Below the pieces are notes generated by a model. That model ran no database searches, was not told the DNA's origin, and saw nothing but the letters and a program-made list of their open reading frames with translations. A stretch of DNA of 64,000 nt from Hyaloraphidium curvatum SAG 235-1 (Eukaryota; Fungi; Monoblepharomycota), in contig JAIVFI010000032.1 in the NCBI GenBank assembly GCA_025558095.1, forward strand, positions 496,001 through 560,000, given 5' to 3'. Below, in pieces: positions 3,304-19,683 of this stretch. Positions within the stretch are counted from its first letter, which is position 1, and the number at the start of each line of letters is the position of its first letter. The position numbers were made by a program, and so were the translations under genes.

Positions 3304-4017
3304 TCAGGGGAAAGGGTCGGTAATGGTCAACACGAAGTTGGGACCGCTGATGCAGGGGAAAACCGCCCACTGCGCCAATGTGTTGCAGTTTTCGCCAAAG
3401 ACGAAGGGCAGGAACGACGCCATGCATGTCCCCGGGGCGCTGTCGGTGATGGGGCCGGACACCGCCGAGGAGATGATCTGCCCGCCGCCGGACCCGATGG
3501 GGCACGCGCCAGCCCCCATGGTGAGGAAGGTGCCCGTGACGTTGACGGCCAAGTTGTAGCAGACTATCTGGCCGATGTCGCCTTGGTAGAACTTGCCGCT
3601 GATGCCCGCGCGGTCGAGGCAGTTGAGGTTCTCGTACCGCTTGTACAGTGCGTGGTCGGTGCCGTGGGTGACGCACGCGAGGGGGAGCTCGGGCGTGGCG
3701 TCGGGATGGTTGAACTCGCTGCGCGGCGGGGGGCCGGGCGGGTCAGCGGGACCCAGAAAGCCGCCGGTGGCGCGCGGGGGAAGCTGTACCAGTACGAGTC
3801 CTCGAGGCAGTCCCCGCACGAGCGGACAAACACCGCGTGCTCCACGGGGGCGGCTTGCTCGGCCGGGCCGTCGTCCACGATGGGCCTGCCGGGGAAATCG
3901 CATCGGCCGTCAGCGCCGGCGCGGGAGCGGGCGCGCCGCAGCCACTCACGCCGCGGAGGCCGACAGGGCGGCGCAGAGCGCAAGCAGAGCGGCGGCAACG
4001 GCGGCGGCGGCGCGCAT
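3304..4017 (-). CDS. Secreted Cys-rich protein, family member 1 (2 introns)
   Basis: Signal peptide MRAAAAVAAALLALCAALSASA; spliced HAVFVRSCGDCLEDSYCEFNHPDATPELPLACVTHGTDHALYKRY followed by a unique ~110-aa Cys-containing domain. Confidence 0.8.
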
Positions 4018-4888
4018 CTCTTTCGAAAGTTTCGGGTTTGTGGACACGGCGGTGCGATTCGTGGCCGCAATGCCGGCCCGGCGGCGTGATTGGAGCATGA
4101 TTGCGGGTCCAGGCCCATCCGGCCATCTCGGGGCGGGCAACCCTACGATGCCCACCATGTTTCCGGACACACGCCATTCCGACCGCGGCCATCCGGAATG
4201 GAAGCTCTTGCTCCGGCTCACCGTTTCCGACGCTGATCCCGCGGATTCGGCACATTGTAGGGTCTCGCGGGCGGAATCGGTCGGACGAACCAGCCGCCGC
4301 GGCCGGCGGAAGCCACGGCGCCCAACCGCCGCCTTCGCCGACGCCGCCCGACCGCCGCCTTCACCGACGAGCACGGCCACTCCATGCCGGCGCACGTCTT
4401 TGGCCGCGAGAGCCTCGTCGCGGGCCGCGCCACGGCGCCAACCGGCGCCGGCGACGAAGGGTGTAGTGAGAGGGGGCACGCGCGCCGACCGGGCCCGCCG
4501 GCGCCGGTGGCGAGCGCTGGCTGGGGCGCCGGCCCGGGGAAGGATCTCGACGCTGTCTACACCGATGCGCCTCGGACCGCGCCAAAGAAAGGGAGTACTT
4601 CGAGCCCAGGGCGTTCCTGCGGAACCGCACGCCAGGCAACCCACGCCTCCTTCAAGTTCTTCAAAAGCGTATGGGGAAAGTAAACGCAACATTACTGCAC
4701 AATGTGGGGATAGTAAAAGTAGCTGAAACACCACCAGCTGGCGTAACGTACACCGACGGAGCGGCGCTCGACGAATTCATGAGCACGACGCTTCATCCTC
4801 GGGCCGAGGGGGCCTCTCCTTCGCACCAGTGGATCGGCCCGCTCCCCGCGTTTCTTGCCCGGATACATACTTGCCATACGGGACGCCT

Positions 4889-6235
4889 TCACTGGCTTTC
4901 GCCGCCCTCCCCGCCGATCGCGAACCCCATCCTCTCCAGATCCCGCGCCGTCTCCTCCTCCCCGCCCTCGGCGTGCACCTGCCTCGAGAAGAAGAGCAAC
5001 CACCCCGCCAGCGAGAGCCCTTCCTTTTCCCGCTGCACGCGGGCCGGGGGCGGCGCCGCCTTGCTCTTGCCCTCCGCCGGGGATCCCTCCGCAGGCTGTC
5101 CGGCGAGCCATTCCCCCGTCCAGATCCTCGTTTCCGGGTCGACGCCCCCCTCGAGTGCCGCGACCATCGATTTGGCCTCCTTGAGGGTGACCGGGTGGCC
5201 GTTGGCCTTGTGCACCGCGGTCGCGAAGCCCGCGGGGGGGAGCACGGCGTCGCCGCCGAAAGCGCGGAAGGCGCGGAGGAGGGTCGTCAACAGGGAGGAG
5301 CGGAGATGGAAGGGGGGGTTGGTGGGGTCCGAGAGGAGGGATGTGGGGATGACGTCGGGCGTGGCGTGGGGTGGAGGGTCGGCCTCGTCCGCCAGCTGCC
5401 GAAAGTCGTCATCACCACCCATTTCGATGCCGATGTGCGCCATCTCGGCGCACGCCTCGTTGTGCCCCTCGAGGAGCAGCAAAAACGCCAGCAGCCTGAT
5501 CGAAGGAAGGTGGTTGGGAACCATCCTGAGCAGGTGCACCAGCCTCTCCCCCGGCGCCAGCGTGCGCACCGACAGCGCCGAGCCGCCGGAAGAGACGGAG
5601 AGGTGTTCGGCGCGCTCGGCGAGCTCGGCGTCGGAGGAGCGGATGCTCCGCGTGGAGCTGTTGGGTCCCCCCTCGGCGTCCGAGCCGTCCATCGACACGT
5701 CGCTGTCCGATGCCGCGCCCGACGGGCCGGGCGCTGCGGAGTCGCCGGCCACTTCGGCCTCGGAGCTGCTCCCCGCGGCGTCCATCGCGTGCTCGGGCCC
5801 CCCGTGGCCCGTCTTGCCCTCGAGCGCCCTGACCTCCTCCAGCACCTCCTCGAACGTCTCCTCGATCCCCGCCAGCTCCCCCGCCACCTCGTCCTCCTCC
5901 TCATCAGTCATCTCCGGCGCCGGTGCCCGCGGCTTGCCGGCGGCCTTTGCCCACAGGTCGGCCCGCATCCGCGCGCGGGCGACGTCCTCCCGCGCGGGCT
6001 CCCACGGCTCGTGCTCCGCCCCCGGCAGCAGCGCCGCGAGCTCCTCGACCTTGGCGGCGTGCGTGAAGTGCCGCGCGAACGCGGATGCCCAGTGCGGCGA
6101 CGCGGCGGCCGCGGCGGACACCGACGAGCAGACGAGGGAGAGCGGCGCGAGGAGCCGCGGGGGCAGCGCGGGGGACGCCGCGACGAGGGAGAGCGCGGCG
6201 GTGGCGGGGTCGGGGGCGGCGCGGTCGAGCTCCAT
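4889..6235 (-). CDS. Hypothetical protein; possible F-box-like N-terminus and EF-hand-associated C-terminus
   Basis: Long GC3-rich ORF from MELDRAAP; C-terminal GLSLAGWLLFFSRQ...EETARDLERMGF resembles fungal EF-hand-associated segments. Confidence 0.6.
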   Translation of the reverse strand: MELDRAAPDPATAALSLVAASPALPPRLLAPLSLVCSSVSAAAAASPHWASAFARHFTHAAKVEELAALLPGAEHEPWEPAREDVARARMRADLWAKAAGKPRAPAPEMTDEEEDEVAGELAGIEETFEEVLEEVRALEGKTGHGGPEHAMDAAGSSSEAEVAGDSAAPGPSGAASDSDVSMDGSDAEGGPNSSTRSIRSSDAELAERAEHLSVSSGGSALSVRTLAPGERLVHLLRMVPNHLPSIRLLAFLLLLEGHNEACAEMAHIGIEMGGDDDFRQLADEADPPPHATPDVIPTSLLSDPTNPPFHLRSSLLTTLLRAFRAFGGDAVLPPAGFATAVHKANGHPVTLKEAKSMVAALEGGVDPETRIWTGEWLAGQPAEGSPAEGKSKAAPPPARVQREKEGLSLAGWLLFFSRQVHAEGGEEETARDLERMGFAIGGEGGESQ

Positions 6236-6539
6236 CGCGGCGGGGGACACGCGGGGTGACGGGCAAGGGGCGACGCTACAGGGTAAACAAAGAGTCCGCG
6301 ACCACCCCACACAGGCTGGAACACCGGCGCAACGGAAGCAAAGCACCATCAACGAGTCAATAAGCTTTGGGCCTCCGTAGCATCCCGGGGATCTCTCCCC
6401 GAAAAAAGGAAAGACCAGCACGCTCGCACCGCTTGCCGACAATCCCCTGCTTCTGTCTCTATGGCGGGCCCACGCCGGCTCCCCTTTCGCTAGACGCCTC
6501 CGAGCTTCTCGCGCTCTTCCCGCTCCGTGCGCCTCCGGA

Positions 6540-7320
6540 CGGCCGTCGTCGTGGTGGGGCGTCCTCATCGGCGCCTCCTTCTTCCTTTCAGCTTCGACGT
6601 GGGTCTTCGGAAGCTACCTCGTCCGCGCGGCGCGGACGAGCCCCGCCGACGTGCGCCTCCGCACCCGGCTGCACCGTCGCGCGACTAGCCACGCGCTGCG
6701 GGACTTCCTCTCCCGCGCGCGCGACGCCCTGGTCCACGGCACCCCGCTCGGCGACCCGTGGACTGGCGAGCCCTATGCCGTCCTTCACGCGTCCTACGAG
6801 CGGCGTTGGCTCGCCGCCAGGGCCGTCCGCGCGCTCTCATCCTCCGCGGCCTTCACCGCCCTCGTGACCGTCTTCGTCCCCCTGGCCTTGCTCGCCGGTG
6901 CGGCGGCCAACATCGCCGCGGGCGGCTGCATCCCCTTCTGGACCGTCGCGTGGGCGCTCGTCGCCCTCGTCAGGCCGTGGGTCGACCTTGCGCATCTGCC
7001 GGCGTCCAACGCGCAGATCGACGCCACTGATCTCGCTCTACGGCGACGCCCGCACCGCCCTTCAATCCATGCTCGCCGAATCCCTGCGGCTTCCCGAACC
7101 CCCCGAATGCCGCGCCGCGGAGCTCAGGGAGCACGTGGGCCTGCTCTCCGCGCTGGGGACCGCGGACAACCTCCGCGCGACGTTCGTGGGGATCGCGGTC
7201 ACCTGGGGACTGGCGAAGACGGTGTTCGTGACCGCGGCGAAGCTGGCGGTGGCGCTGTGGAGCGTGCTCAGGGGGGCGGGGGTTTCTTTTACCATCGAGA
7301 CAGCGTGTCCAGGATATTGA
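6540..7320 (+). pseudogene. Multi-pass membrane protein paralog, truncated and frameshifted (paralog of 39330-41043)
   Basis: SWWGVLIG...EPYAVLH...GGCIPFW...SNAQI, frameshift ~7025, then ELREHV...ATFVGIAVTWGLAKTVFVTAAKLAVALWSVLRGAGV...CPGY*. Confidence 0.65.
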
Positions 7321-7446
7321 ATGTTACATGGGCTATTGCGGCCACGCCACACACGTCCGAACCCCATCCCTCCATCTTGCCGCCCCTTCTGCAGATGGCG
7401 CAGGCTCCATCGCGGCCGAAAACGCATCCCTTCCCCCCGCCCCACC

Positions 7447-7764
7447 TCACGCGGCGCGGTGCAGGATCCCCTTCTCCAGCTCCACCACCACCTCGTTCCC
7501 CTCCACCCTGGCCTTGCCGTCCGCAATCAAGCTCATCCCCCCCTCCTCCTTGGCCGGCCACAGCAGCACCACCTCCTGCCTGTCGGCGATGTTGGCCCGC
7601 GTGGTCTTTCCGGCGTCGGCGATGCGCGCGGTGGTGCCGCTGACCGCGGGGCGGCACGAGACGGGGTGTGCCCGCGAGGGAGGGGGGGAGGTGGTGATGA
7701 GGAAGCAGGAGGGGTAGGCGGCGGAGGCGGCGGCGATGCCGTCGGCGGGCACGGGCCGGGTCAT
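7447..7764 (-). CDS. Pyridoxamine 5'-phosphate oxidase-like (FMN split-barrel) small protein, actinobacterial-like
   Basis: Intronless 105 aa: FLIT...AHPVS...GKTTRANI...VVLLWP...MSLIADG.A...GILHR. Confidence 0.65.
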   Translation of the reverse strand: MTRPVPADGIAAASAAYPSCFLITTSPPPSRAHPVSCRPAVSGTTARIADAGKTTRANIADRQEVVLLWPAKEEGGMSLIADGKARVEGNEVVVELEKGILHRAA

Positions 7765-8821
7765 TTTGGGTGTTCGTTGGGGGGCCCGGCGGTGCGTTGG
7801 CGTTGGGAGCAGGGCGCAACGCAGGGGCCGCGGGGCGATAGGCAGGGCAGCGATCGAACGGAATCAAGGAAGAAGCCGGAAGCAAGCTGCCGACGGGCCC
7901 GAGACGGATGTGGCGGTCTGCCTCCCGGCAATCCCTTGCTGGTCCCCGTAAACACCGCGGTGACGCCACAATGGCCGGCTGGTACGGAGGCTGGCAGGCG
8001 CCTCAGGCACCCCAGTGGCTGCCGGCGGGGCCTGCAATGGGCGTCCATGTGGTGGGGGCGATGCTGAGGAGGATCTCGGCGAGGAGGCCGGGGAAGGCGA
8101 CGACGAGATACGGCAAGACGGGGAGGGCGATTGTGGTGGGGAGAACGACGCTGAGATCGAGGATTACGAGGCCTTCAAGCCCGAAGCCACGTTCAAAAAG
8201 ATGGCGCAAGCGCTTCAAGTGCTGAAGAACGAGCGCTTGCGCTTGCCGATGCTGGTCCGCGACGCAGACGCCAAGACCCTCCGCCCGCGGTGACGGCGAT
8301 CCCGTGCAGGCACGTGCTGCTGCGCGAGGGGTGCTGGGGGAGGGTGGTGGTCGCGATTGGGAGCGGGTGTCCCAGGTGCGGGAACGGGGTGCAAGAGTGG
8401 CTCGAGGTCCAGTTCTGAAGCGCGGGGAAAGGTGGCGCGAACGCAATAGTCTTGAATGCAGGCACGAGTCTTTCAACCCGATGAGCCCATCAGCAGTGTT
8501 CCTCGTCGGATCCAATCCAGCATCCTGCCGACAAGTCCGCCTCGCCGCTCTCTCTGCCCTTGAGCCCGACCCGAGACCTTGCCCGATTGCCTCCGCGCCT
8601 CCCGATCCGCAGTGACCGATCCCGTGCCGCAAACGGTATCGCCAATCAAGCCGTTTTACGCCCGGGAAAGGTGCTGATGCGAAGTGTGTGGAACGGGGAC
8701 GAGCTGCGGCGAAACCCGGTAGGGAAATCGGGGTTGTTCCGCGGCCCGCGCCAAATCGCCGCCGCCCCAACAAAATCGCACCACAGCGTCGCCGCGCAGA
8801 GCAGCCATCACCCAACGAATA

Positions 8822-10645
8822 ATGTCTTCTCATCAAGCACTCTTTACGGCCGCCGGCGTCGCGGCCGGCGCCCTCGCCCTCGGCACCCTCGCCGCGCGCC
8901 GCGTGCTTCGAGTCGGACCCTGGGCCTCGGCGTCCGACGTCCTCTTCGGGCCCGCCGAGCCCCCGGCGCTACCCACCGCCGCGGATGCCGACGGAATCAT
9001 CAAAATCGACGTCGACACCGCGCGCTACTCCCTGACGGGCACCGTGTACAAGGACTTCCTCCCGGTCGCCGAGGCGTTCCTCGAGAACATCGCGCGCGGG
9101 GAGGAGGTCGGCACGGGGCTGTGCATCTACCACCGGGGGAAGCGGGTCGTGGACATTGCGGGGGGGTTGAAGGACGGGTCGGGGAGGCGGTACGATCTGG
9201 AGAGCGGTGAGTATACCCGTGCAGACTCGGCGGCGCCTGATGCTGACTGCCCCCGCCGATTGAAGTCAACCAGGTCTGGTCATCGGGCAAGACGGTGACG
9301 GCCATCTTGGCCGCGTACTGCGTCTCGAAGGGCTACTTTGACTACGAGGACCCTGTCGCCAAGTATTGGCCAGAGTTTGCGCAGGGCAACAAGGCGGGCG
9401 TGCGCATCAAGGACCTCCTCCAGCACCGCGCGGGGGTCGGCATGATTGATGAGCAAAATCTGCCGCCGGTCGAAATGTTCTGGGAGGATTTGGACGGGGT
9501 CGCGGGGATGCTGGCCAAGCAGGAGCACAACTGGGGCGGAAGGAAGGTGCAGAGCTAGTGGGTACTCCGGATCGGGGCACGGGGGACAACGCTAAGGACA
9601 GTGCGAGTAGCCACGCATTCAGCGGAGGGTGGTTCCTCAACGAGATCCTGCGCCGCGCGCATCCGGAGAAGCTCACGATCAGGGAGGTCATGGAGCGTGA
9701 GGTGCTACCGCTCGTCATCCCGAAGGGCGAGGAGAAGGGACATCCGTTGTTCGTGACAGTGCCCGAGACCCCGGACGTGATGGGCCGCCTGTGGGACCTG
9801 ACCGAGTTGGTGACTCCTCGTAACTCGTTCTGATCTCGTCGATGCTGACCGTCGTGCAAACCAGATACCCCAAAATCCGGGCCCTGATCCGGTACCTCCT
9901 CCCCACCGTCGTCAACCCCGAGCCCATCCACCCCGAATTCCTCAAGGCCATGGCCGACCGCAACAGCGTCGCCACCCGCTCCGCCGCGCGCTCCACGCCC
10001 CCCATGACCCGCCCCGACCCCATCACCGGTCGCCGCGGGCCGGTGCCGCTGGGCACCAACACATGGGGCATACGCAGGGGACAGCACGTCTCCTTCGCGG
10101 TGCATTCCAACGCGCGCGCGCTGGCGCGGTTCGCGGCGGTCGTGTGCGAGGGAGGCGAGCTTGACGGAGTCAGGCTGCTCGATCCGGAGACGCACGCGCG
10201 GGCCACGGCGAGGGATCTCTGGGTGGGGCTGGACCGGTTCTTCAATAGGGTAGTGCCCTACACCCACGGCGGATTCGCGATGTGGGAGGGCACGCAGGTG
10301 CCCAACATCCCGATCGAAGACGAGTGGCTGCCTGACGGCGGGGGGTGGACGTGGCACGGTGGGTTCCGGACGGCGGATGCATTTTATCAGTGGCTGACGT
10401 GCTTCCTCTTCGTTGTTACAGGATGGGGAGGGTACGGCGGGTCGCGGATCATCTGGGAGCCCACGAAGCGCCTCGCCTTCGGATAGTCAGTGCATCCGCG
10501 GGCGTCGGACTTCGCTGTTCTTACACCGTTCTGCACCAGCGTACCCTCGGGGATGCAGATCGCGATCATGGGCGACAAGAGGTCGGCCAAGCTGCTCCTG
10601 ACGACGATTGAGTGCCTCAAGAGGATCGGGGACGCCGACAACTGA
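8822..10645 (+). CDS. Beta-lactamase-related serine hydrolase/esterase (EstB-like), multi-exon, N-terminal membrane anchor
   Basis: GLCIYHRGKRVVDIAGG; VWSSGK (SxxK); DPVAKYWPEFAQGNK...IKDLLQHRAG; SNARALAR; GWGGYGGS. Confidence 0.9.
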
Positions 10646-10748
10646 ACCTCGCTCCACTGTAGCCTTCCATAGATGTAGACGCCAAATAGAACTGACAATG
10701 AAATGCATAAATGCTACGAGAGAAACACGGCACGAAACGAAACGGGCT

Positions 10749-13037
10749 TTAACCCCCTCTCCCACCACGCGACCCGCCGCCGCCCGACGATCCGCCCCTC
10801 TGAGAACCCCTGGCGCTTCCCTGCCCCCCGCTCTTGCCTTCCCTACCCCTCCCGGGATTTGCACTCCGCCCGAACCCGTCTTTGCCGTCCTCTTCCCCCA
10901 TCTTTTCGTCCCTTTCCCCGCCCCTCCCGCCGCCACGGCCGCCGCCTCCGCCGCCATCCAGCTCCTCGTCGGGCGGCGGCGCAGTGTACGGCTTCCCCGA
11001 TACCCCGCCTTCGAGCACGTCGTCGGGCGGGGGCACCGTGTACGCCCGCACCGCGCCCCTCCCGCCCTCTTCGTGCAGATCCTGCAGCAGGTTGCCGTAG
11101 CTCTCTTCCACATCCCCGCTGGCCCTCTCGAGCGCACGTGCGGTGTCGCCCCGTGGGGGACGGGCGGCGCGGGGGTCGGGAGGGCGGCCGTCGGGCGTGG
11201 TGAATGAGAGCCGAGTGTTGAGTTCCGACGCCTGGCGCTGCCCGGCGGCGAGGAGGCGGTTCGGGTCGAGGGAGGCAAGGAACGGGTGACACATAACGGC
11301 TTCCCAGCCTTCGCGCGGCGGATCGGGTCAGCTGAGGCGGCGGACGTGGCTTTCCGCCGGCGCACCTTTCTTCCCCTCGGCCTGGTAGCTCCCCAACCTC
11401 GTCCTCGGATCCGGATCGAGCAGCCTCGAGACAAAGTCCTCCGCGTCGTCCGGCAGCCCGCGCATCCTCGCTGCATCCAGGAACTCCCGCTGCGCCGGCA
11501 CCCGCCCGCGGCGGAACGCCCTGCCCCAGAACACGGAGTAGTCGACCTGGTTCTTGAGCTGCGGCAGGAAGGGGCCGTTGTGCTGCTGGTTCCATTCAGG
11601 CTGTGGAGTCCCCGTGAGGAGGTTGAAAACCGTGACGCCCAGGGACCACCAGTCGACCTCGAGGCCGTCTATTCGGGCTGTGAGTCAGCTGCTTGCAGGC
11701 GGAGGACGAATGGGGGACCCACAGGGGGGCGCGTCGGGGTTGCGGTAGTACACGATCGCTTCGGGGGCGCTGATGCGGTAGTCGCACACGCCTGCTTCGG
11801 ACGAGTCTTGCTCGACGAGCTGCGGCGGAAGCATGAGATGGTGGATGGACGGCGTGCCGCGTGTCGCACCGATGCCTCGATCGCGCAGCCGAAGTCGGCA
11901 ACCATGGGGCGGCGCTTGGCGTCCAGCAGCACGTTGCCGGGCTTGAAGTCCCTGTGTATGATCCCCTTGGAGTGCATGAAGCCGATAGCGATCGCCAGCT
12001 GGCCTGCCATGATGCGCGCCTTGTCGACAGGGAGGCCCGGGCGCACGGGGTCGCGGAAGAACTTGCCCTTGCCGAGCAGCTCCGACTGTCGGTGGGGCGG
12101 CGCTTAGTCACTTGCGCGTTCCCGGCCCAAGGGAAGGAGCACCTCGAGGTCGCTGAAGGCCTTGGCCATGGCGATCGAGAAGGTGATCTTGAACGGGGTG
12201 TTCTTACCAAGCGGGGCCCTGCTGGTCCAGGAGCCCCAGAACTTGATCATGTACGGCCCACCGTCGAGAGCTTTCATCTGCGGTCGACAGGGCACGTCAG
12301 TCCGTTTCCTGATGGCCTTGCGGCGCCGGAACCCACGAACTGCGGCTCCGTCCGCGATGCGCGCCGCACGACGCACGGCTTGGGGTCGTCACCGCACTTG
12401 GGCCACAGCGAGAAGCTCTGCTCCTTGATGGCAAACAGCCTCATCTGGCTGCCCTCTGCTTCGTCCAGCGGGCCCGGCCGCACGCCTCGCAGGGAGCCGA
12501 GCAGCACCCGGCCGAATGCACCGGCGCCGAGCTCCTTGCCCGTGTCGAAGTAGACGAGAGGGACTATCGTGCGGTTCCTGTTGCGCAGCACCCGGTTCGG
12601 GAGGGAGTGCAGGGGCGAGACCACCGTGGGCTGCGCGCGGACGGCGGGGCACTGCCGGGCGGGCGGGGCGCCTCCCGACGCCGATCCACTGCGGGGACGC
12701 CCTTCCGGCCTGCCCGGCGGGCCGTCGTCGACGTCGACCTGGGCGGCGTACGCGCTGCCCCTCCCCGAGTCGTCGATGTCGACCTGCGCCGAGTAAGCGC
12801 TGCCGCCCCCGCCCTCGCCGGCGTCCGGCCTCTGCCGCTGCCGCTGCGGCTCCTCCCGCGCGGTTCGGGATCGTCGATGTCGACCTGCGGGGAGTAGGAG
12901 CTTCCCTCGGGCCTGCCGCCCCCGCTGACGCTCGGCCTCCGGGAGCCCCCCTCGGCCGCCTCCGCCGCGCCCGCAAGCAGAAGCAGCACCAGCAGCGCAA
13001 GAAAGGACGCTGCCCGGCCACGAATCCGCCGTGCCAT
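10749..13037 (-). CDS. Ser/Thr protein kinase with N-terminal signal peptide (frameshift near 12830)
   Basis: MARRIRGRAASFLALLVLLLLAGAAEA; LGAGAFGRV, FAIK, HRDFKPGNVLL, ADFG, SAPE, DWWSLG, FVSRLLDPDPRTRLG, HPFL across GT-AG introns. Confidence 0.8.
12722..12900 (-). repeat. Three coding repeats (S/A)Y(S/A)xQVD(I/V)DD
   Basis: SSYSPQVDIDD, SAYSAQVDIDD, SAYAAQVDVDD between the signal peptide and the kinase domain. Confidence 0.8.
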
Positions 13038-13354
13038 CGAGCGTCTGGCGTGCGGGAGAATGTTGCGGATCCAATCGCGGAGGATGGGCGGGTCCCGCTC
13101 TCTGCCCTTGCGGCCACGATGCCCGGTCAGGGTCCGCGCGGTCAGCAAGAAAAGAGTCGCGGACATCCAGGACGGCAACGCACTCCTACAGCAGGGCCCC
13201 GGACCGGACAGACAGCCCGGCAAAGCAGACCGCGCTGTGTAAGTACCGCCCGTCGCGTCTATTGTGTCCGTGGCCGATCACGCACAATCCATCGCCGATA
13301 CCATCCAAAGCAAGCCGACCCCAACTCGTTACATAGAACGCCTCCTCCCTAGCT

Positions 13355-13983
13355 CTAGCAGGTCGCCGTCGGGCACGTCGCCGGCGCCTGCGCAAACACC
13401 ACCGACGACGGGTTGTCGCCGAACGCGGTGCACCCCGTGAAGGTCTTGCACTGGAACAGCGACGGCCCGCCGACGTAGGCAAATTCGAAGTGTGTGCAAC
13501 CCGGGCGGGCCTCGCACGAGGCCTGGCATTCGTCGCGGTCGGTGATGCCCGGGTCTTGCTGGCCTTCGTAGCTGCAGCAGAAGTGGCTTCCGCAGTTGGT
13601 GAACTGTCCGGAGTTGGCGTAGCGGCGATACAGCTCGTGGGGGTCGCCGGCAGGGGCGGCGACACAGGCAACACGGTCTTGGGGGGCGCCGGGGTAGGAG
13701 AACTCGCTGCGGGAAAGGGGGGGATTCGAGGATCAGGAGCCGGGGGGCGCTGGAGCAGCAATGCTGCCCACCAGAACGATGTGCCAGCGCATTCGGAGCA
13801 GGACCGGGCGAAGACGACGTGCGGGGCGGCGGGGGCGGCCTCGGCAGGGCTGGAATGCGGGAAGGAATCGGGTCAGTGTCGACGCGAGGAACGGGGCAGC
13901 AGTTGGGCCCGCCTGGCAAGCAGGGCGACGAGCAGGGCGGTGGCGGTCAGAACCATGGCGGTGCTGGTGCGGTGCTGGACCAT
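13355..13983 (-). CDS. Secreted Cys-rich protein, family member 2 (PAN/Apple-like C-terminus)
   Basis: MVLTATALLVALLA; HVVFARSCSECAGTSFCEFSYPGAPQDRVAC...GDPHELYRRY; then CGSHFCC...DECQASCEARPGCTHFEF...CKTFTGC...CPTATC*. Confidence 0.8.
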
Positions 13984-14647
13984 CGTGTCTCGCGGCGGGG
14001 TTGGGGTCGTGGCGCTTGGCGAACTCGACGCGCTGGTACCGGAGCGCTTTCTCGTCTGCGAGGCGGCTAGAGGGCTCGCTTTCTCCTCCTCCGAGTGGTT
14101 TTGCGGTGGCTTCGTGGTGGCCGGCGGCCTTTTGTACCGCCGATCGTAGGGTCCGTCGCACGCGGCGATGTCGTGCGGGCGGGTTCCACACGGCCACGCT
14201 TACGCGCCTCAGTCCAGCGAGCAGGCGCGCATGGGAGATCCAGCCGCGATTCCTGTTGGGATCGTGCCAGGTTGGTTCCGGGGGTCGGCGGTGCGACCGC
14301 CCTCTGGCCGCGCGCGGCACGGCGCGCCGAAAGCCTCGGTCGGCAATGATCCGCTGAGCAGGATTCGGAGGCCCATGTTCCGCGCGCCGGCCGGCCACTT
14401 ACCGGCCGGATGGGCCGCAGATGCTTGGTTTCCACCGAAAAAGTACGGAGCGGTGGAGCTGGCCGACATGGGGTTCCGGAGGGGCGCGGAATCGAGGCGG
14501 ATGCGGCCGAAAGAGAAGCCGAGGCGCACAAAGGAGTGCCACCGAAGAAACGATGTGTGCAGAAACGGTTCTCGGCATTCAAATACGCGGCACCAAGATG
14601 CAGCTCCTCCTTCCTCACTCCCACCAATCCCCTTCCCGGAACGACCA

Positions 14648-16458
14648 TCATTCGGCCGCCACCGTCGCCTGCTTCAGCGCCGCGTCCAGCTCGCCCACCT
14701 CCTCGTCGTCCACGCCCTCGGGCTTGGGGATAGACGGCGCGTTGGCCACCCGGTGCGCCGACAGGGAGCTGCCTGACTTGTCGCCGAACGCCGCGACCAC
14801 TTCCTGCCGGTCAGCCCAAGGTTCGCCGCGCGCACGAAGGGGGACCCACCCTTGGCCTGCACCGCCATCCTCTTGAGCGTCGCGATGCCGTTCCGCTTCA
14901 TCGAGTTCCGCTTGATCGTCCCGCTGATGTCCGGAGCGACCAGGTCGGCGCCCAGATTCGTGGCCGCGGCCGCGGGCTTCTCCTCCGGCGGGCGCGCGAA
15001 CTTCTCGAGCCAGGGGTGCTGCAGCGCGTGCGCGGAGCGCATGCGGGCGGAGGGGTCCACGACAAGGAGCTTGGAGATGAAGTCTTTGGCTGAATGGGGG
15101 GGTCAGTGCTGGGATCAGAAGAGGGGAGGCAGGGGCTGACCTTCGTCGGAGATCTCGCCCCAGTCCTCGATGGGGAAGGAGAAGCTGCCCTTCTTGATGA
15201 GCTCGAACATCTCGGCCTGGGATCCGGTCTCCGAGGCGAAGGGGAGGTACCCGCACAGCATCGAGTCTGCCCCCAGGCGTCAGCACGCCCGGTCCGTCCC
15301 GAAAACCAAAATGGGCACGTACACGCGATGCACCCGGCGCTCCACATGTCGACCTCGATCCCGTGTCCGCCGCGGTTGAGGATCTCGGGGGCCACGTAGG
15401 CGGGGGTTCCGCAGATGGTCTGCAGGAAGTGCGAGGTGCCCACGAGGCGCGAGAAGCCGAAATCCGTGATGAGGATGTGGTTGTCCCCGGGCTTCTTGAA
15501 GAGGATGTTCTTCGGGTGCCGGATCAGCGGATGGGAGAGGAAAGGGAGGGGAACGGCCCACTTCGGGTTTGAGGTCCCGGTGCACCACGCCCTTCTTGTG
15601 CAGGTAGACCAGCCCCTCGATCAGCTGCTTGATGATGATCGCCGCGTCGTTCTCGCTGAATTCGCCGCGGGATATGATGGCGTCCAGCAGCTCGCCGCCT
15701 TTTTCCCCGTCAGCGTCCGTCCGCACGCTGCGGCACGTGAAGGTCACCTTCGGCCAGGTCCAGGATCAGGTAGATCTCGTCCTTGAGCTCGAAGCTCTCG
15801 TACACCCGCGCCAGGTTGGGGTGCTCGAGCTTGGCCATGATTTCGATCTCGGAGATGACGTCGGATTCCTTGCCCTTGATCTTCTTGCGGTCTGCCGAGC
15901 CGGTGCGGGATCAGTCGGACCGAACGGTGAACGGGGGGCGGGGGAGGCCCACCGATGGCTTTGGCGGCATAAACGGTGCCAGTTTTACGGTCGGTGCACA
16001 GCTTGACGGTCGCTGGGGGCGGAGGGGTTGAGTCAATCTGGTGCCGTCGGGGGAAAGGCAGGCAGTGATCCCGGCACGCGGCGGACCCCCGATTCGGCCC
16101 CCGGCGCGCAGCCTGTGCCAATTCCATGCCGAAGAGCGGGAACCGATTACCGGCAGCGGCCACCGCCGCGCGTGCGGCCCCCCGAGATACTGTATCCCGT
16201 CCACCGCCCAATCCCCCCACCGCACCGACACCCACCGTACGTCCCCGCCCCGAGCGTCTTCCCGACCTCGTACTTCTCCTCCAGCCGCTTCTTCGCGTCC
16301 TCGTAGCCGCCCGCGGACCCCGTCGACGCGACGCTCGACACGCTCGCCAGCGAGCTCGCGGTGTTGGTGCGCTTGGCCGGCGGCGCCGCCCCCGTGGGGG
16401 AGCCGGGCGACCCGGGGCCGCTGTCTTTCTTGCCGAAGAGGGTCTTGAGCTTGTTCAT
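14648..16458 (-). CDS. Ca2+/calmodulin-dependent protein kinase (CaMK1-like), multi-exon
   Basis: [75 protein letters not shown]. Confidence 0.93.
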
Positions 16459-16803
16459 CGCGCCGGGGGAATCGCCGACGGGTGCGTGGTGTTCGGGGGA
16501 CAGGTGCGCGCGCGGGCGTCCCGCGGAAACTTCCCCGGGAAAGGCGAGGGAAGGGAGACGCATTCCACGGATGACGCGTCCGTTCCCCCGGGAACAGCCC
16601 GAATCAAGCATGATTCATCCATCCCGACCGTCATCCGCGCCCGATCGGGATCGCCTCGACGGACGATCGGTTGACTTGGCGCCTTGCTGGCGCGCAGTGG
16701 ATCCACCTAACTCCGCATCCCCTCTCACCGAAGGAGCGAGGACGCCCCCTGTGCCCCTCCATTTCCCTCCCCCACCAATCTTTGACACGGCTTGCGGAGG
16801 GAG

Positions 16804-17279
16804 ATGGGCTGCCTAGAGGATATCTGCTGGTGCGCGGCGCCCCTCGACACCCGTCCCACCGCCACGGAGGAGGCCTGACTGTGGTGTCCCCGGGGCGGAC
16901 GCAGCTTCCCTTGCAAGCTCTGCAGTTCCTTCTGCGACATCCTGGTGCGTGTTTCCCCGGTGCCGGCGGGGTTCCCGGTCGCTGACTTCGCGGCAGAACG
17001 GTGCGGGGGATCCTCCCTCCGCGTCCGGTCCAACGGGCACTGACCCCTCCTCTATCTTTCCCGACCTGCTACAGTCATTTTCTGCTGCCCGTGCCGGTGC
17101 ATGTGCGGCTGCCCCAAAACCAGCACCGGTACCCTCTCCTCCCTTCTTTCCACCTGGCCACCGTGAGCTTACGGCCCGCCCGAACCCCCGCAGAGAAGCA
17201 GAAGGAGCGCGAAAAGCCCATCATCATGCAGCAGGTCGTCGTGCAGCAGGGACAGCCGCAGATGCAGCCCCCGCGGTGA
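16804..17279 (+). CDS. Small Cys-rich protein (69 aa, 12 Cys), 5 exons including a 4-nt microexon
   Basis: Exons 16804-16829, 16905-16944, 16997-17000, 17075-17128, 17194-17279 give MGCLEDICCFPCKLCSSFCDILNVIFCCPCRCMCGCPKTSTEKQKEREKPIIMQQVVVQQGQPQMQPPR. Confidence 0.75.
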
Positions 17280-17322
17280 CCTTCCCGGGTGCCGAGGGCG
17301 CGGCTTGCCCCAGGGGGAGGGG

Positions 17323-18204
17323 TCAGGAAGGGCGGGAGGATCGCGCGGCGAGGAGGGGGAGGGCGAGAGAAACGGCTGCCGGGAGCTGTGCGGCAGAGAG
17401 GGCAGGATGGAGGGCGAGGAGGGCGCCGGCGGCGGCGTACGCGAGGTTGGAAAGCGGCGCCGGGGCAGGCGGGGAGCGGGGTAGGGCGGCGAGCGCGCAG
17501 AGGAGGTGCAGGGCCGCGGTTACGGCTGCTGCGCCGGAATCAGAAGGGGTGAAAAAGGCGGAGAGGGGCGTGGGGAGGGGAGGTACGGGGAGGCCGAGGG
17601 CGGGCAGCGGGCGCAGGGCCCAGAGGGCGCAGAGCAGGGCAAGCAGCGCCGAGCCCGATTTGCCCTTGCTGTCCGCTTTTGCAATCAAGGCAGGAAGCCC
17701 AAGCAAACCGGCCGCCGCAGCCATTCCGAACCTGCCCCCTGCCAACGCGTGCCCGACCAGGAACGCCGCCGTTCTCCCCCAATCCGGCCCCATGCCCGGC
17801 TCCAACGCCCGCGTTGCCAGGTCCAACAGGCACCACGCGTCCACTGCCGCCGGCACCACTGCCGCCAGCCCGGCCCAAGATGCCTGCTCGGCGGCGCCGC
17901 CCTCGCGGCCGCGCTGGCCCCCCAGGAACCCGGCCTCGCCCAACGACACGGCAGCCTGCGCGCCGGCGAGGAACAGCAGGGCGACATAGGGGAAGTACCG
18001 CCACCCGGGCCACTTTTCCGCCCCCGAAAGCGATAGAGCGGGGGCGACGAGGAGCAGCGCGGCTGCGGACCAGCCGACGAACGACGGGGCGAGGTCGGAC
18101 CCGGAGAGCGTGGCGGCGAGGAGTGCAGAGGGGAGCAGGAGGGACAGGTAGGGGAGGAAGGACAGGAGGGCCGGCGGCGCCGGGGGTGGGCGCGGGCGCG
18201 GCAT
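17323..18204 (-). CDS. Hypothetical polytopic membrane protein
   Basis: 293-aa ORF with many Leu/Ala-rich hydrophobic segments. Confidence 0.55.
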   Translation of the reverse strand: MPRPRPPPAPPALLSFLPYLSLLLPSALLAATLSGSDLAPSFVGWSAAALLLVAPALSLSGAEKWPGWRYFPYVALLFLAGAQAAVSLGEAGFLGGQRGREGGAAEQASWAGLAAVVPAAVDAWCLLDLATRALEPGMGPDWGRTAAFLVGHALAGGRFGMAAAAGLLGLPALIAKADSKGKSGSALLALLCALWALRPLPALGLPVPPLPTPLSAFFTPSDSGAAAVTAALHLLCALAALPRSPPAPAPLSNLAYAAAGALLALHPALSAAQLPAAVSLALPLLAARSSRPS

Positions 18205-18689
18205 CGTGAAGTTGGGGGAGGCGGGACTCGCACATGCGGCCCGATCGAGGTCACATCCGGCCCGCGGCCGGATTCGGGTTGGACTGCGGGTTCCACGGAA
18301 CTAATCGACCGGATTCTTCCGTTTCGTAGGCGCGGTGGACGGCGGAGCTTGGCTTGCGAGGTGCCTGATGTATGGCTCGCCCGGGGGCCAACGCGCGTTC
18401 CGCCATGATCGGGCAGGATCTAGCCCCTCGTCCGACACCGGTTTCCGGCGGTGCCCATCGCCGCTCTGTGGCCACCGTACGGGGCGGACCGCCGTGGTGG
18501 CGAAAGTGCAGCAGCAACATATGACTGGTCTGGTCTGGTCTGGACGTCAAGCAGACCACACATGGGTACTCATCAACCCCCAACCTGATGCGGGTGACCG
18601 TGGAGCCTACCTGAGGCTTCAATGCAGTGGCCGGTCGCCATGCGGAATCGGTCGGCAGGGTTTCGGGACCCCAGCCTCCGTCGGCGGAG

Positions 18690-19061
18690 GCTTTCCCCGC
18701 AGAGCGGCGCGCGGCCAACGGGCGGCCGCACCGACTGCCACACCGCCGAACCCAGGAGAACGCCAAGCATGTTCCGAACAAAGCTGCCGCTAGTTTGTCG
18801 ATGCTCCTTTGCCCGCTGGGGTCGGAACCGGTCGGGAGCGTTGGCCGTCTGGAACCCGCCCGCATCACATCGCCCACGCCCTTATGGGCCGTACGGTCGG
18901 CGCTACAAAAGGGCCGCCGGCCATCGCGAAGCCACCGCAGAACCATTCCGAGCTCCGAAGGAGGAACCAAGCTGAGCTCGCCCCTTTCACACGGCAACTG
19001 CCGCCGCGCAGAGAAGCACTCTTGTCAGCCGAGCGCCCCGTGAACCTTCCGCAAAGAAACG
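18690..19061 (+). repeat. Upstream region duplicated in inverted orientation at ~14000-14330
   Basis: GGAACCCGCCCGCA, TACAAAAGG(G)CCGCCGGCCA and GAAGCCACCGCA.AACCA occur here and, reverse-complemented, upstream of member 2. Confidence 0.8.
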
Positions 19062-19683
19062 ATGGCCTCCCGCATCTCCCGCGCCGCGATGGTTCTCGCC
19101 ACCCCCGCCCTGCTGTTGGCCCTGCTTTCATGGCAGGGACACTGGCTGCACCGTCAAGCGTGGCCGCTGATTTGCCTTTCTCATCGCAGCCCCGCCGCCG
19201 CCGCCCCGGCCGCCCCGCATGTCGTCTTTGAACGCTCGTGCACCGAATGCACCGCTTCGGCATTCTGGTCAGCTGCCCTCCTCCTCACCGTGCCGCACGG
19301 CTTCTGATCCGCGAACCCCCCCTTGTCCTCACAGCGAGTTCGCCTTCCCCGGGGCCCCCCAAGACCACGTCGCCTGCATCACCACCGCCCCGGGCGACGC
19401 CCACGCGCTGTACCGCCGCTACGAGGGCGAATTCGTCTCCTGCGGCAGCGTCTACTGCTGCATCACCGACGGCGGCCGCAACGAACCCGACATCTCGGAC
19501 CGCGATGGATGCCAGGCGGCCTGCGCCGCGAGGCCCGGCTGCACCCACTTCGAGTTCGGCTCCTCTGGCGGGCAGTTCTTCTGCGGGACGTACACGTCGT
19601 GCACCAACTCGGGGGCCGACGGGGGGTACGCCGTGTATGCTCAGGCGCCGGCGGCGTGCCCGGCGCTGACCTGCGGGTTGTGA
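19062..19683 (+). CDS. Secreted Cys-rich protein, family member 3 (PAN/Apple-like; inverted duplicate of member 2)
   Basis: MASRISRAAMVLATPALLLALLS; HVVFERSCTECTASAFCEFAFPGAPQDHVAC...GDAHALYRRY; CGSVYCC...DGCQAACAARPGCTHFEF...CGTYTSC...CPALTCGL*. Confidence 0.82.

Follow-up and report, generated by a model that had tools for sequence, protein, structure and literature searches.

A stretch of 64,000 nucleotides (nt) from the fungus Hyaloraphidium curvatum SAG 235-1 (positions 496,001 to 560,000 of contig JAIVFI010000032.1, assembly GCA_025558095.1), which was analysed as a whole and which we call the window, holds three genes for proteins built on one plan: a hydrophobic N-terminus, a cysteine-rich module of 47 amino acids (aa), the motif LY[KR]RY and a C-terminal part that we call the cargo. 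Residues around the motif are numbered from the bond between Arg and the last Tyr, Leu being P4, the first Tyr P3, the dibasic pair P2 and P1, and the last Tyr P1'; a slash marks this bond (LYRR/Y). The three genes and their parts lie at the following positions of the window.

Gene 1 (P0003, 192 aa): 3304..4017, minus strand, exons 4017-3950, 3885-3790 and 3718-3304
Gene 1 introns: 3949-3886 and 3789-3719, minus strand, both GT-AG, both phase 2
Gene 1 module (residues 38-83): 3634..3842, minus strand, interrupted by the Cys-codon intron
Gene 1 LYKR site: 3648-3637, minus strand, P1' Tyr at 3636-3634
Gene 1 cargo: 3307..3633, minus strand, 109-aa six-Cys domain of unknown fold, cargo class c2
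Gene 2 (P0001, 166 aa): 13355..13983, minus strand, exons 13983-13913, 13849-13772 and 13706-13355
Gene 2 introns: intron 1 13912-13850 (GC-AG) and intron 2 13771-13707 (GT-AG), minus strand
Gene 2 module (residues 33-79): 13619..13824, minus strand
Gene 2 LYRR site: 13633-13622, minus strand, P1' Tyr at 13621-13619
Gene 2 cargo: 13358..13618, minus strand, PAN/Apple-like ten-Cys domain
Gene 3 (P0002, 165 aa): 19062..19683, plus strand, exons 19062-19132, 19190-19267 and 19335-19683
Gene 3 introns: intron 1 19133-19189 (GC-AG) and intron 2 19268-19334 (GT-AG), plus strand
Gene 3 module (residues 33-79): 19215..19422, plus strand
Gene 3 LYRR site: 19408-19419, plus strand, P1' Tyr at 19420-19422
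Gene 3 cargo: 19423..19680, plus strand, PAN/Apple-like ten-Cys domain

The public entries P0003, P0001 and P0002 are each labelled "hypothetical protein" of Hyaloraphidium curvatum. A preliminary description of this DNA, made from the letters alone, had placed here three genes with a signal peptide, introns at matching positions and a shared module, and this picture holds, the exon-by-exon translations of the three genes being in agreement with the public models; the sequences used in our searches were public annotated proteins or single exons. The N-terminus is hydrophobic in every one of the three. Intron 1 is of phase 2 and sits where the signal peptide ends, and intron 2, of phase 2 as well, lies inside the codon for the third Cys of the module (TG/gt...ag/C, the slashes here marking exon borders). 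Each protein carries the pattern H.VF.RSC..C....[YF]CEF..P........AC........LY[KR]RY. When P0003 was compared with P0001 by BLASTP, only residues 39-85 and 34-81, respectively, were aligned (49% identity, E 1e-11) and nothing downstream, just as had been described for the first gene against the other two; P0001 and P0002 align over their full length with 57% identity.

Splicing could be followed in the stretch with genes 2 and 3, where the contigs of one public run are without introns; because they skip introns, these contigs derive from RNA. Intron 1 of gene 2 corresponds to the RNA joint 13849->13913 (63 nt, GC..AG on the minus strand), and intron 2 is confirmed by an RNA contig which exits at 13772 and resumes with the first bases of exon 3. 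In gene 3, intron 2 corresponds to the joint 19266->19334 (cut +1), and for intron 1 an RNA contig piece stops at 19132, at the predicted GC donor. The RNA therefore agrees with the splice models first proposed for these two genes; the model of gene 1 is the public one, the RNA comparison having covered genes 2 and 3. The two GC-AG introns (13850-13912, minus strand, and 19133-19189, plus strand) are seen as an RNA joint in gene 2 and as a contig end in gene 3.

These genes belong to a much larger family. Searching the 32-Mb H. curvatum genome with exon 3 of gene 2 returned 114 places, mostly matched over the first 30-35 residues only, and a profile of the 29-aa half-module (alignment A1, EFxYPGxPxxxVACV...LYRRY) gave 188 candidates, 150 of which were scored and 137 of which reached E<1e-7 (E 1e-15 to 1e-8). 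Nearly all of the 137 strong matches are full length, and they are spread over more than 40 contigs. Since such E-values recur at about 137 genome places, the similarity of the half-module is far beyond chance. From these counts the family probably comprises roughly 140-190 genes: the preliminary description was right in announcing an undescribed modular secreted family, and its three genes are to be replaced by this number. Fetching 90 loci gave 86 clean members, the sample on which the genomic cargo counts below are based. In 61 of these 86 the exon-2 half of the module (xVFxRSCxxCxxxx[FY]) with the same TG/gt donor stands 46-172 nt upstream; about six are intronless at the Cys-codon position, and in some the intron has slid by 1 nt. 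Among 49 annotated genes mapped to DNA, the Cys-codon intron is present in 41 and the intron at the signal-peptide boundary in 34. Of the 64 members in which the module begins no later than residue 60, 62 have a hydrophobic N-terminal stretch as judged by a simple hydrophobic-window heuristic.

Several public models of family members deserve a remark. P0037, P0058, P0029 and P0063 fuse a family gene to its neighbour, and this moves the module to the interior of the protein (the fusion partners are a VIT family protein, a short-chain dehydrogenase and a long N-terminal extension), and in P0070 and P0007 the Cys-codon intron is retained or mis-spliced. Could the family itself then be an artefact of annotation or assembly, or else consist of pseudogenes or of a repeat element? 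This explanation is essentially refuted. Degenerate copies do exist, with short or out-of-frame cargo frames, with an in-frame stop in exon 2 (L057) or as fused gene models, but most copies have intact frames, their introns and cysteines are conserved, the RNA is spliced as modelled, and copies with diverse, confidently modelled cargo occur on more than 40 contigs.

Family members tend to lie near contig ends: of 120 copies, 41 are no more than 50 kb from an end (34%, where 13% would be expected), with a binomial p of about 3e-9 which treats the members of tandem clusters as independent copies. Examples of clusters near contig ends are the following.

C28:1645-17298, family cluster near a contig end
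C3:9616-17344, family cluster near a contig end
C16:8981-32610, family cluster near a contig end
C31:4123-9608, family cluster near a contig end

A search for TTAGGG arrays found none, and for this reason we do not call these copies subtelomeric.

The constant part of the family is the module, with four invariant Cys, presumably forming two disulfides, and with invariant Phe, Arg, Glu, Pro and Ala. It matches no Pfam family, whether as exon pieces or in 88 full-length members, which agrees with the earlier impression of a module without a known domain, and its profile finds no PDB sequence at E<=10. A second profile (A4), built from 11 contiguous modules over 47 positions, was run against a library of 1.84 billion cluster representatives and returned 88 proteins at E<=1e-3, 64 of them at E<=1e-10. 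Of the 88, 79 were verified as coming from H. curvatum, 50 by exact correspondence to its loci and 29 by the name of the source; the 50 proteins mapped to loci include three from word searches. The single foreign match, the metagenome protein P0083, was rejected as a relative, being the translation of a tandem junk repeat. No relative outside H. curvatum was verified in this search, at the sensitivity of HMMER, with all but ten or so of the 88 matches checked and within the holdings of the library. To judge by sequence, the module is thus confined to H. curvatum among the library contents at that sensitivity. The absence of relatives is taken from the A4 profile, since word-index protein searches recovered no more than 7 proteins, all from H. 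curvatum, and overlooked the majority of paralogs. The profile search that the preliminary description had called for has in this way given about 137 strong matches in the genome and none verified outside H. curvatum in the library.

What follows the module is anything but constant. Similarity among members stops at the Tyr after the dibasic pair, and the parts beyond the site in 74 annotated members fall into 34 BLAST clusters with lengths from 2 to 486 aa; the C-termini are therefore diverse and do not represent a single fold. Among the 86 genomic members, PAN-like cargo leads with 31 copies, followed by a twelve-Cys domain with about 13 and an Ig-like, beta-rich domain with 6. Pfam matches in the cargo include PAN, EGF and Stig1 (3 members each for the last two), NHL or teneurin-NHL (2 members), Kelch repeats (L034), the ALK/LTK glycine-rich domain ALK_LTK_GRD (L028, 31 bits) and a weak CBM_4_9, and the majority of cargo classes are without a Pfam match. 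The cargo of P0044 consists only of a 33-aa six-Cys knottin-like peptide after LYKR, with a weak match to Toxin_23 (17.5 bits, under the cut-off). The number of Cys in the cargo is even in 62 of the 74 members and is always four in the module, which fits two independently oxidised units. In the Ig-like class (L040, L045, L063) a second, conserved L-x-R-R motif (QLARR or QLLRR) is found about 55 residues into the cargo and could be a further processing site.

For the cargo of genes 2 and 3, the PAN/Apple domain announced by the preliminary description finds support in structure and less in sequence. Pfam PAN_1 scores 21.9 bits for gene 2, 19.4 bits for gene 3, which is below the cut-off of 21.4, and 28.2 bits for the paralog L027. 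With a predicted model of module plus PAN, the leading PDB matches of Foldseek are almost all PAN/Apple, including plasminogen, the N-domain of HGF, factor XI, apicomplexan lectins and the SRK ectodomain, with a root-mean-square deviation (rmsd) of 2.2-3.1 Å over 75-92 columns, weak E-values of 0.016-1, and a template modelling (TM) score by target of 0.45-0.60 for single-domain entries. These matches suggest that both cargos have the PAN/Apple fold, the E-values being weak. The cargo of gene 1 has no Pfam match, and the atlas fold search gave only chance-level matches; at least four other copies of it exist in the genome, three of them behind a module and one in a 595-aa frame without a module nearby. 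Likewise one copy of the twelve-Cys class stands without a module, in a 358-aa frame, and the genome search with exon 3 of gene 2 had five PAN-only matches. The module-free homologs of the gene 1 cargo and of the twelve-Cys cargo may have supplied cargo domains to the family or may themselves have lost the module; they lie as follows.

G000:C26:458898-459098, homolog of the gene 1 cargo in a 595-aa frame
G000:C10:135702-136031, homolog of the twelve-Cys cargo in a 358-aa frame

The nature of the cargo bears on one of the alternative explanations, namely that the module is a leader of the CRN/RXLR type, or of the type of polymorphic toxins, which delivers effector domains into other cells. The constant N-terminus, the variable C-terminus, the large expansion and the enrichment at contig ends would all suit such a function, but neither a Crinkler nor a toxin family was found in the 88 members, and what they carry are binding domains (PAN, EGF, Stig1, NHL, Kelch and Ig-like), not enzymes or toxins. 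H. curvatum lives free in fresh water as a saprotroph and has no known host. Because of this way of life and of the binding-type cargo, we regard delivery as very improbable, and as the least likely when set beside the module as a permanent domain or as a product in itself, to which we return below.

The site between module and cargo is nearly invariant. In the 76 annotated members with a complete module, P4 is Leu in 74, P3 Tyr in 68, P2 Arg in 66 and Lys in 9, P1 Arg in 72 and P1' Tyr in all 76, while P2' is mostly Ala, Asp, Glu or Gly; LY[RK]R as such is found in 67 of the 76, at about residue 70-90. The protease Kex2 needs Arg at P1 and favours a basic residue (Lys or Arg) at P2 and an aliphatic one, such as Leu, at P4, and the P3 residue is not contacted directly (PMC8528282), so that by its P1, P2 and P4 residues the site fits the specificity of Kex2. 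The genome has genes of the kexin type: the P domain of proprotein convertases was found at 11 places, and two loci have both Peptidase_S8 and the P domain. The loci of kexin/furin-like type are these.

G000:C21:105266-108526 (L091), kexin/furin-like locus with a strong P domain
G000:C33:284659-287937 (L092), kexin/furin-like locus with a strong P domain
G000:C17:596445-596761, possible third kexin/furin-like locus, strong P domain

The genome thus contains no fewer than two or three convertase genes of this type, and for many fungi a single Kex2 homologue has been reported (PMC8528282); the several convertase genes may have expanded together with the family of their substrates.

Structure prediction with AlphaFold2 of residues 25-166 of P0001 (37 aligned sequences) gave a mean predicted local distance difference test (pLDDT) of 87 and a predicted TM score (pTM) of 0.64. 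The module appears in this model as three strands and a short helical turn with a pLDDT of 85-90, the cargo is above 90, and the minimum of 57 falls on residues 51-60 (LYRRYANSGQ), between the two confident domains. Modelled by itself from 74 aligned sequences, the module has a pLDDT of 77 and shows the same three strands, with 81-85 over residues 1-30 and a floppy tail at residues 41-47 (pLDDT 56). On these models the module most likely folds on its own. From the motif, its position in a linker, the parity of Cys and the presence of kexins we infer that a kexin-type convertase plausibly cuts at LYRR/Y. The Kex2-type site that the preliminary description took as given has therefore gained a fit to the known specificity (PMC8528282), a low-confidence linker and kexin genes, and cleavage there is plausible.

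A module that folds by itself may also be the main product for which the genes are kept, a small bioactive, disulfide-stabilised and defensin-like peptide set free by a cut at its C-terminus, the variable C-terminal parts being co-products or carriers. We searched for its structural neighbours: Foldseek against the PDB gave nothing significant (E above 3), the VIA wide search had a best Z of 2.9, with beta-defensin-like mini-proteins at Z 2.0-2.9 (rmsd 1.8-2.8 Å over 32-43 residues), the atlas fold search reached a TM score of at most 0.55 (0.53 for a beta-defensin-like cluster), and a search of the language-model atlas returned nothing significant. A beta-defensin-like fold was rejected on these values (Z 2.9, Foldseek E >3) and on the four Cys of the module against six, and the likeness is probably the generic resemblance of small sheets. 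That the best neighbours, weak as they are, resemble beta-defensins speaks for the module as product, as does its being the conserved part, conservation usually marking function. On the other hand a Z below 3 is within the noise for a model of 47 residues, the four Cys of the module fall short of six, its sequence does not look cationic on inspection, and more than 100 genes with elaborate, well-folded and diverse C-terminal domains would be an unlikely route to one peptide. We find this explanation doubtful.

How does the module relate to its cargo? Modules that share a cargo class are 54% identical, and modules from different classes 50%; the nearest module is from the same cargo class in 14 of 50 cases, where 6.5 are expected; and the module tree needs 47 changes of cargo class, against about 53 in shuffles. 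Frequent swapping cannot be told here from a poorly resolved tree, because the module has only 47 aa. At the level of DNA, all pairs whose exon-3 halves are at least 85% identical have the same cargo, and pairs with unrelated cargo reach 80-84%, about the level of gene 2 versus gene 3. This comparison of the exon-3 half turned up no two genes with almost the same module but different cargo, and hence no recent swap is seen. An intron stands at or just after the LYRR/Y junction in only 7 of the 49 mapped genes; since the junction usually falls within an exon, classical exon shuffling at this point does not in general account for the joining of module and cargo. Recombination at the dibasic junction, which the preliminary description had proposed, is for these reasons not borne out. 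The role of carrier which it gave to the module is conjectural.

Bringing these results together, we lean, by a modest preponderance, toward the explanation that the family consists of lineage-restricted and hugely expanded prepro-proteins which are cut by a kexin and share a generic pro-module. The product is laid out as a signal peptide, a spacer of 5-20 aa, the 47-aa module, the L-Y-[RK]-R/Y site in a linker predicted to be flexible, and a cargo that may be any of more than 20 unrelated domains, mostly of binding or adhesion type. The signal peptide would be removed and the protein oxidatively folded in the endoplasmic reticulum (ER); a proprotein convertase of the kexin type would then cut after the dibasic pair in the late secretory pathway, and this would release a mature protein starting at Tyr together with the free, folded pro-module. 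The module might act as a handle for ER export, sorting or quality control, or as the partner of a common receptor. We suppose such a generic role because the conservation of the module is about equal whatever the cargo; a chaperone specific for each cargo is unlikely. The data themselves document the family with its architecture, expression and splicing, its absence from the other databases searched, the agreement of the site with Kex2 specificity and the kexin genes; the cut and the role of the module are deduced from them.

The most serious competitor is that nothing is cut: the module would stay as a permanent N-terminal domain for anchoring, oligomerisation or ligand binding, and LYRRY would be conserved for reasons of structure or binding. 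The module is indeed folded and strongly constrained, as its invariant residues named above show; the Tyr residues at P3 and P1' are kept beyond any need of a kexin; and cargo of adhesion or binding type, which predominates here, is common in multidomain mosaics. Yet L-x-[KR]-R is exactly the motif of fungal Kex2 and lies outside the core of the module, in the least confident and linker-like stretch, the 33-aa knottin-like cargo of P0044 resembles a released peptide, and the sequence of the module is essentially independent of the cargo class. We therefore hold a permanent domain to be rather unlikely. The reading of the family as kexin-cut prepro-proteins nevertheless has several points to its disfavour. 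Arg is absent from P1 in 4 of the 76 members. The invariant Tyr at P3 and P1' exceed the known specificity of Kex2, which does not explain them, so that the motif may have a different or a further function. A folded and conserved pro-domain, unlike the disordered and unconserved ones typical of Kex2 substrates, could mean a lasting functional domain. The independence of the two domains is read from the pLDDT and the pTM (0.64) of predicted models, and the signal peptides were called by a heuristic and not by SignalP.

A related explanation, possible although we would not put it first, makes the module a kind of zip-code: a specific receptor or convertase would recognize this folded, disulfide-bonded leader and route an entire class of adhesive or binding proteins into one pathway to secretion or to the cell wall, after which the leader would be clipped off at LYRR/Y. 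It would be a eukaryotic counterpart of bacterial sorting domains, such as the C-terminal domain of the type IX secretion system (T9SS), or of the propeptides of apicomplexan microneme proteins, invented in one early-diverging fungal lineage.

What appears to be new, as far as sequences and models tell, is that one folded and disulfide-bonded leader with a nearly invariant site is reused by more than 100 genes with more than 20 unrelated types of cargo. In this family one sees how a lineage can assemble a wide range of surface and binding proteins through repeated use of one N-terminal cassette. Should the module prove to be a generic leader that is cut off, it would offer an unusually clear natural example in which more than 100 unrelated secreted proteins share a single structured pro-domain. 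This would bear on what pro-domains do in fungal secretion (sorting, folding or an activity of their own), a question described as unresolved for proteins with Kex2-processed pro-domains (K2PP; PMC8528282). In that case it would also open a testable way into secretion in an early-diverging fungus that has hardly been studied, and a portable leader for secretion might be gained as well.

Two other features of the window were met between genes 2 and 3. A highly covered transcript of the minus strand occupies 14570-16482 and has at least 8 short introns of 49-223 nt (CT..AC on the plus strand), and at 16828-17193 there are three RNA joints, one of which, 16944->17074, has the three letters AAC between its sides, a tiny micro-exon.

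Several known systems resemble the family in part. K2PP effectors of plant-pathogenic fungi, such as SnTox3, ToxA and SIX1/4/6, have Kex2-processed pro-domains (PMC8528282). Like these proteins, which are processed by a Golgi kexin, the family has a signal peptide (by the heuristic), a pro-region followed in the N-terminal half by a KR/RR or LxxR site, and a folded mature domain. It departs from them in its pro-region, which is predicted to form three strands and not to be disordered: K2PP pro-domains are short, mostly disordered and mutually unrelated, whereas here a single 47-aa four-Cys module recurs in about 140 or more genes, with a site nearly invariant even at the P3 and P1' Tyr and with more than 20 types of cargo. 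H. curvatum is not known to be a pathogen, unlike the producers of these K2PP effectors. The leaders of yeast prepro-alpha-factor and killer toxin likewise end in a Leu-x-Lys/Arg-Arg kexin site, and their pro-region has a generic role in ER export; they differ in being glycosylated, free of Cys and limited to very few genes, and the Pfam, PDB sequence and Foldseek searches found no relation of sequence or fold between them and the module. Precursors of conotoxins and spider toxins also combine a conserved signal and pro-region, a basic site and a hypervariable Cys-rich mature part. Within one of their superfamilies, however, the mature parts share a scaffold, while in H. curvatum the cargo ranges from 33 to about 490 aa with unrelated folds and the pro-module is itself predicted to be disulfide-bonded. 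The oomycete CRN and RXLR effectors, to which the preliminary description had compared the genes, agree in architecture, with a constant N-terminal module, variable C-terminal domains and a lineage-specific expansion. The analogy goes no further: LxLFLAK, HVLVxxP and RxLR are absent from the alignment of the module, Pfam finds no Crinkler in the 88 members, and similarity stops at a dibasic site and not at a recombination motif. As for the cargo, the PAN/Apple domains of plasminogen, the HGF N-domain, the apple domains of factor XI and the lectins of apicomplexan micronemes have the fold predicted for genes 2 and 3, whose sequences are very divergent and add an N-terminal CC pair and a C-terminal C-P-x3-C tail. 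Together, these comparisons indicate that the family is homologous to none of the leader and precursor systems and that it is nearest to the K2PP effectors and the yeast prepro leaders in its working, and to the conotoxin precursors in its architecture.

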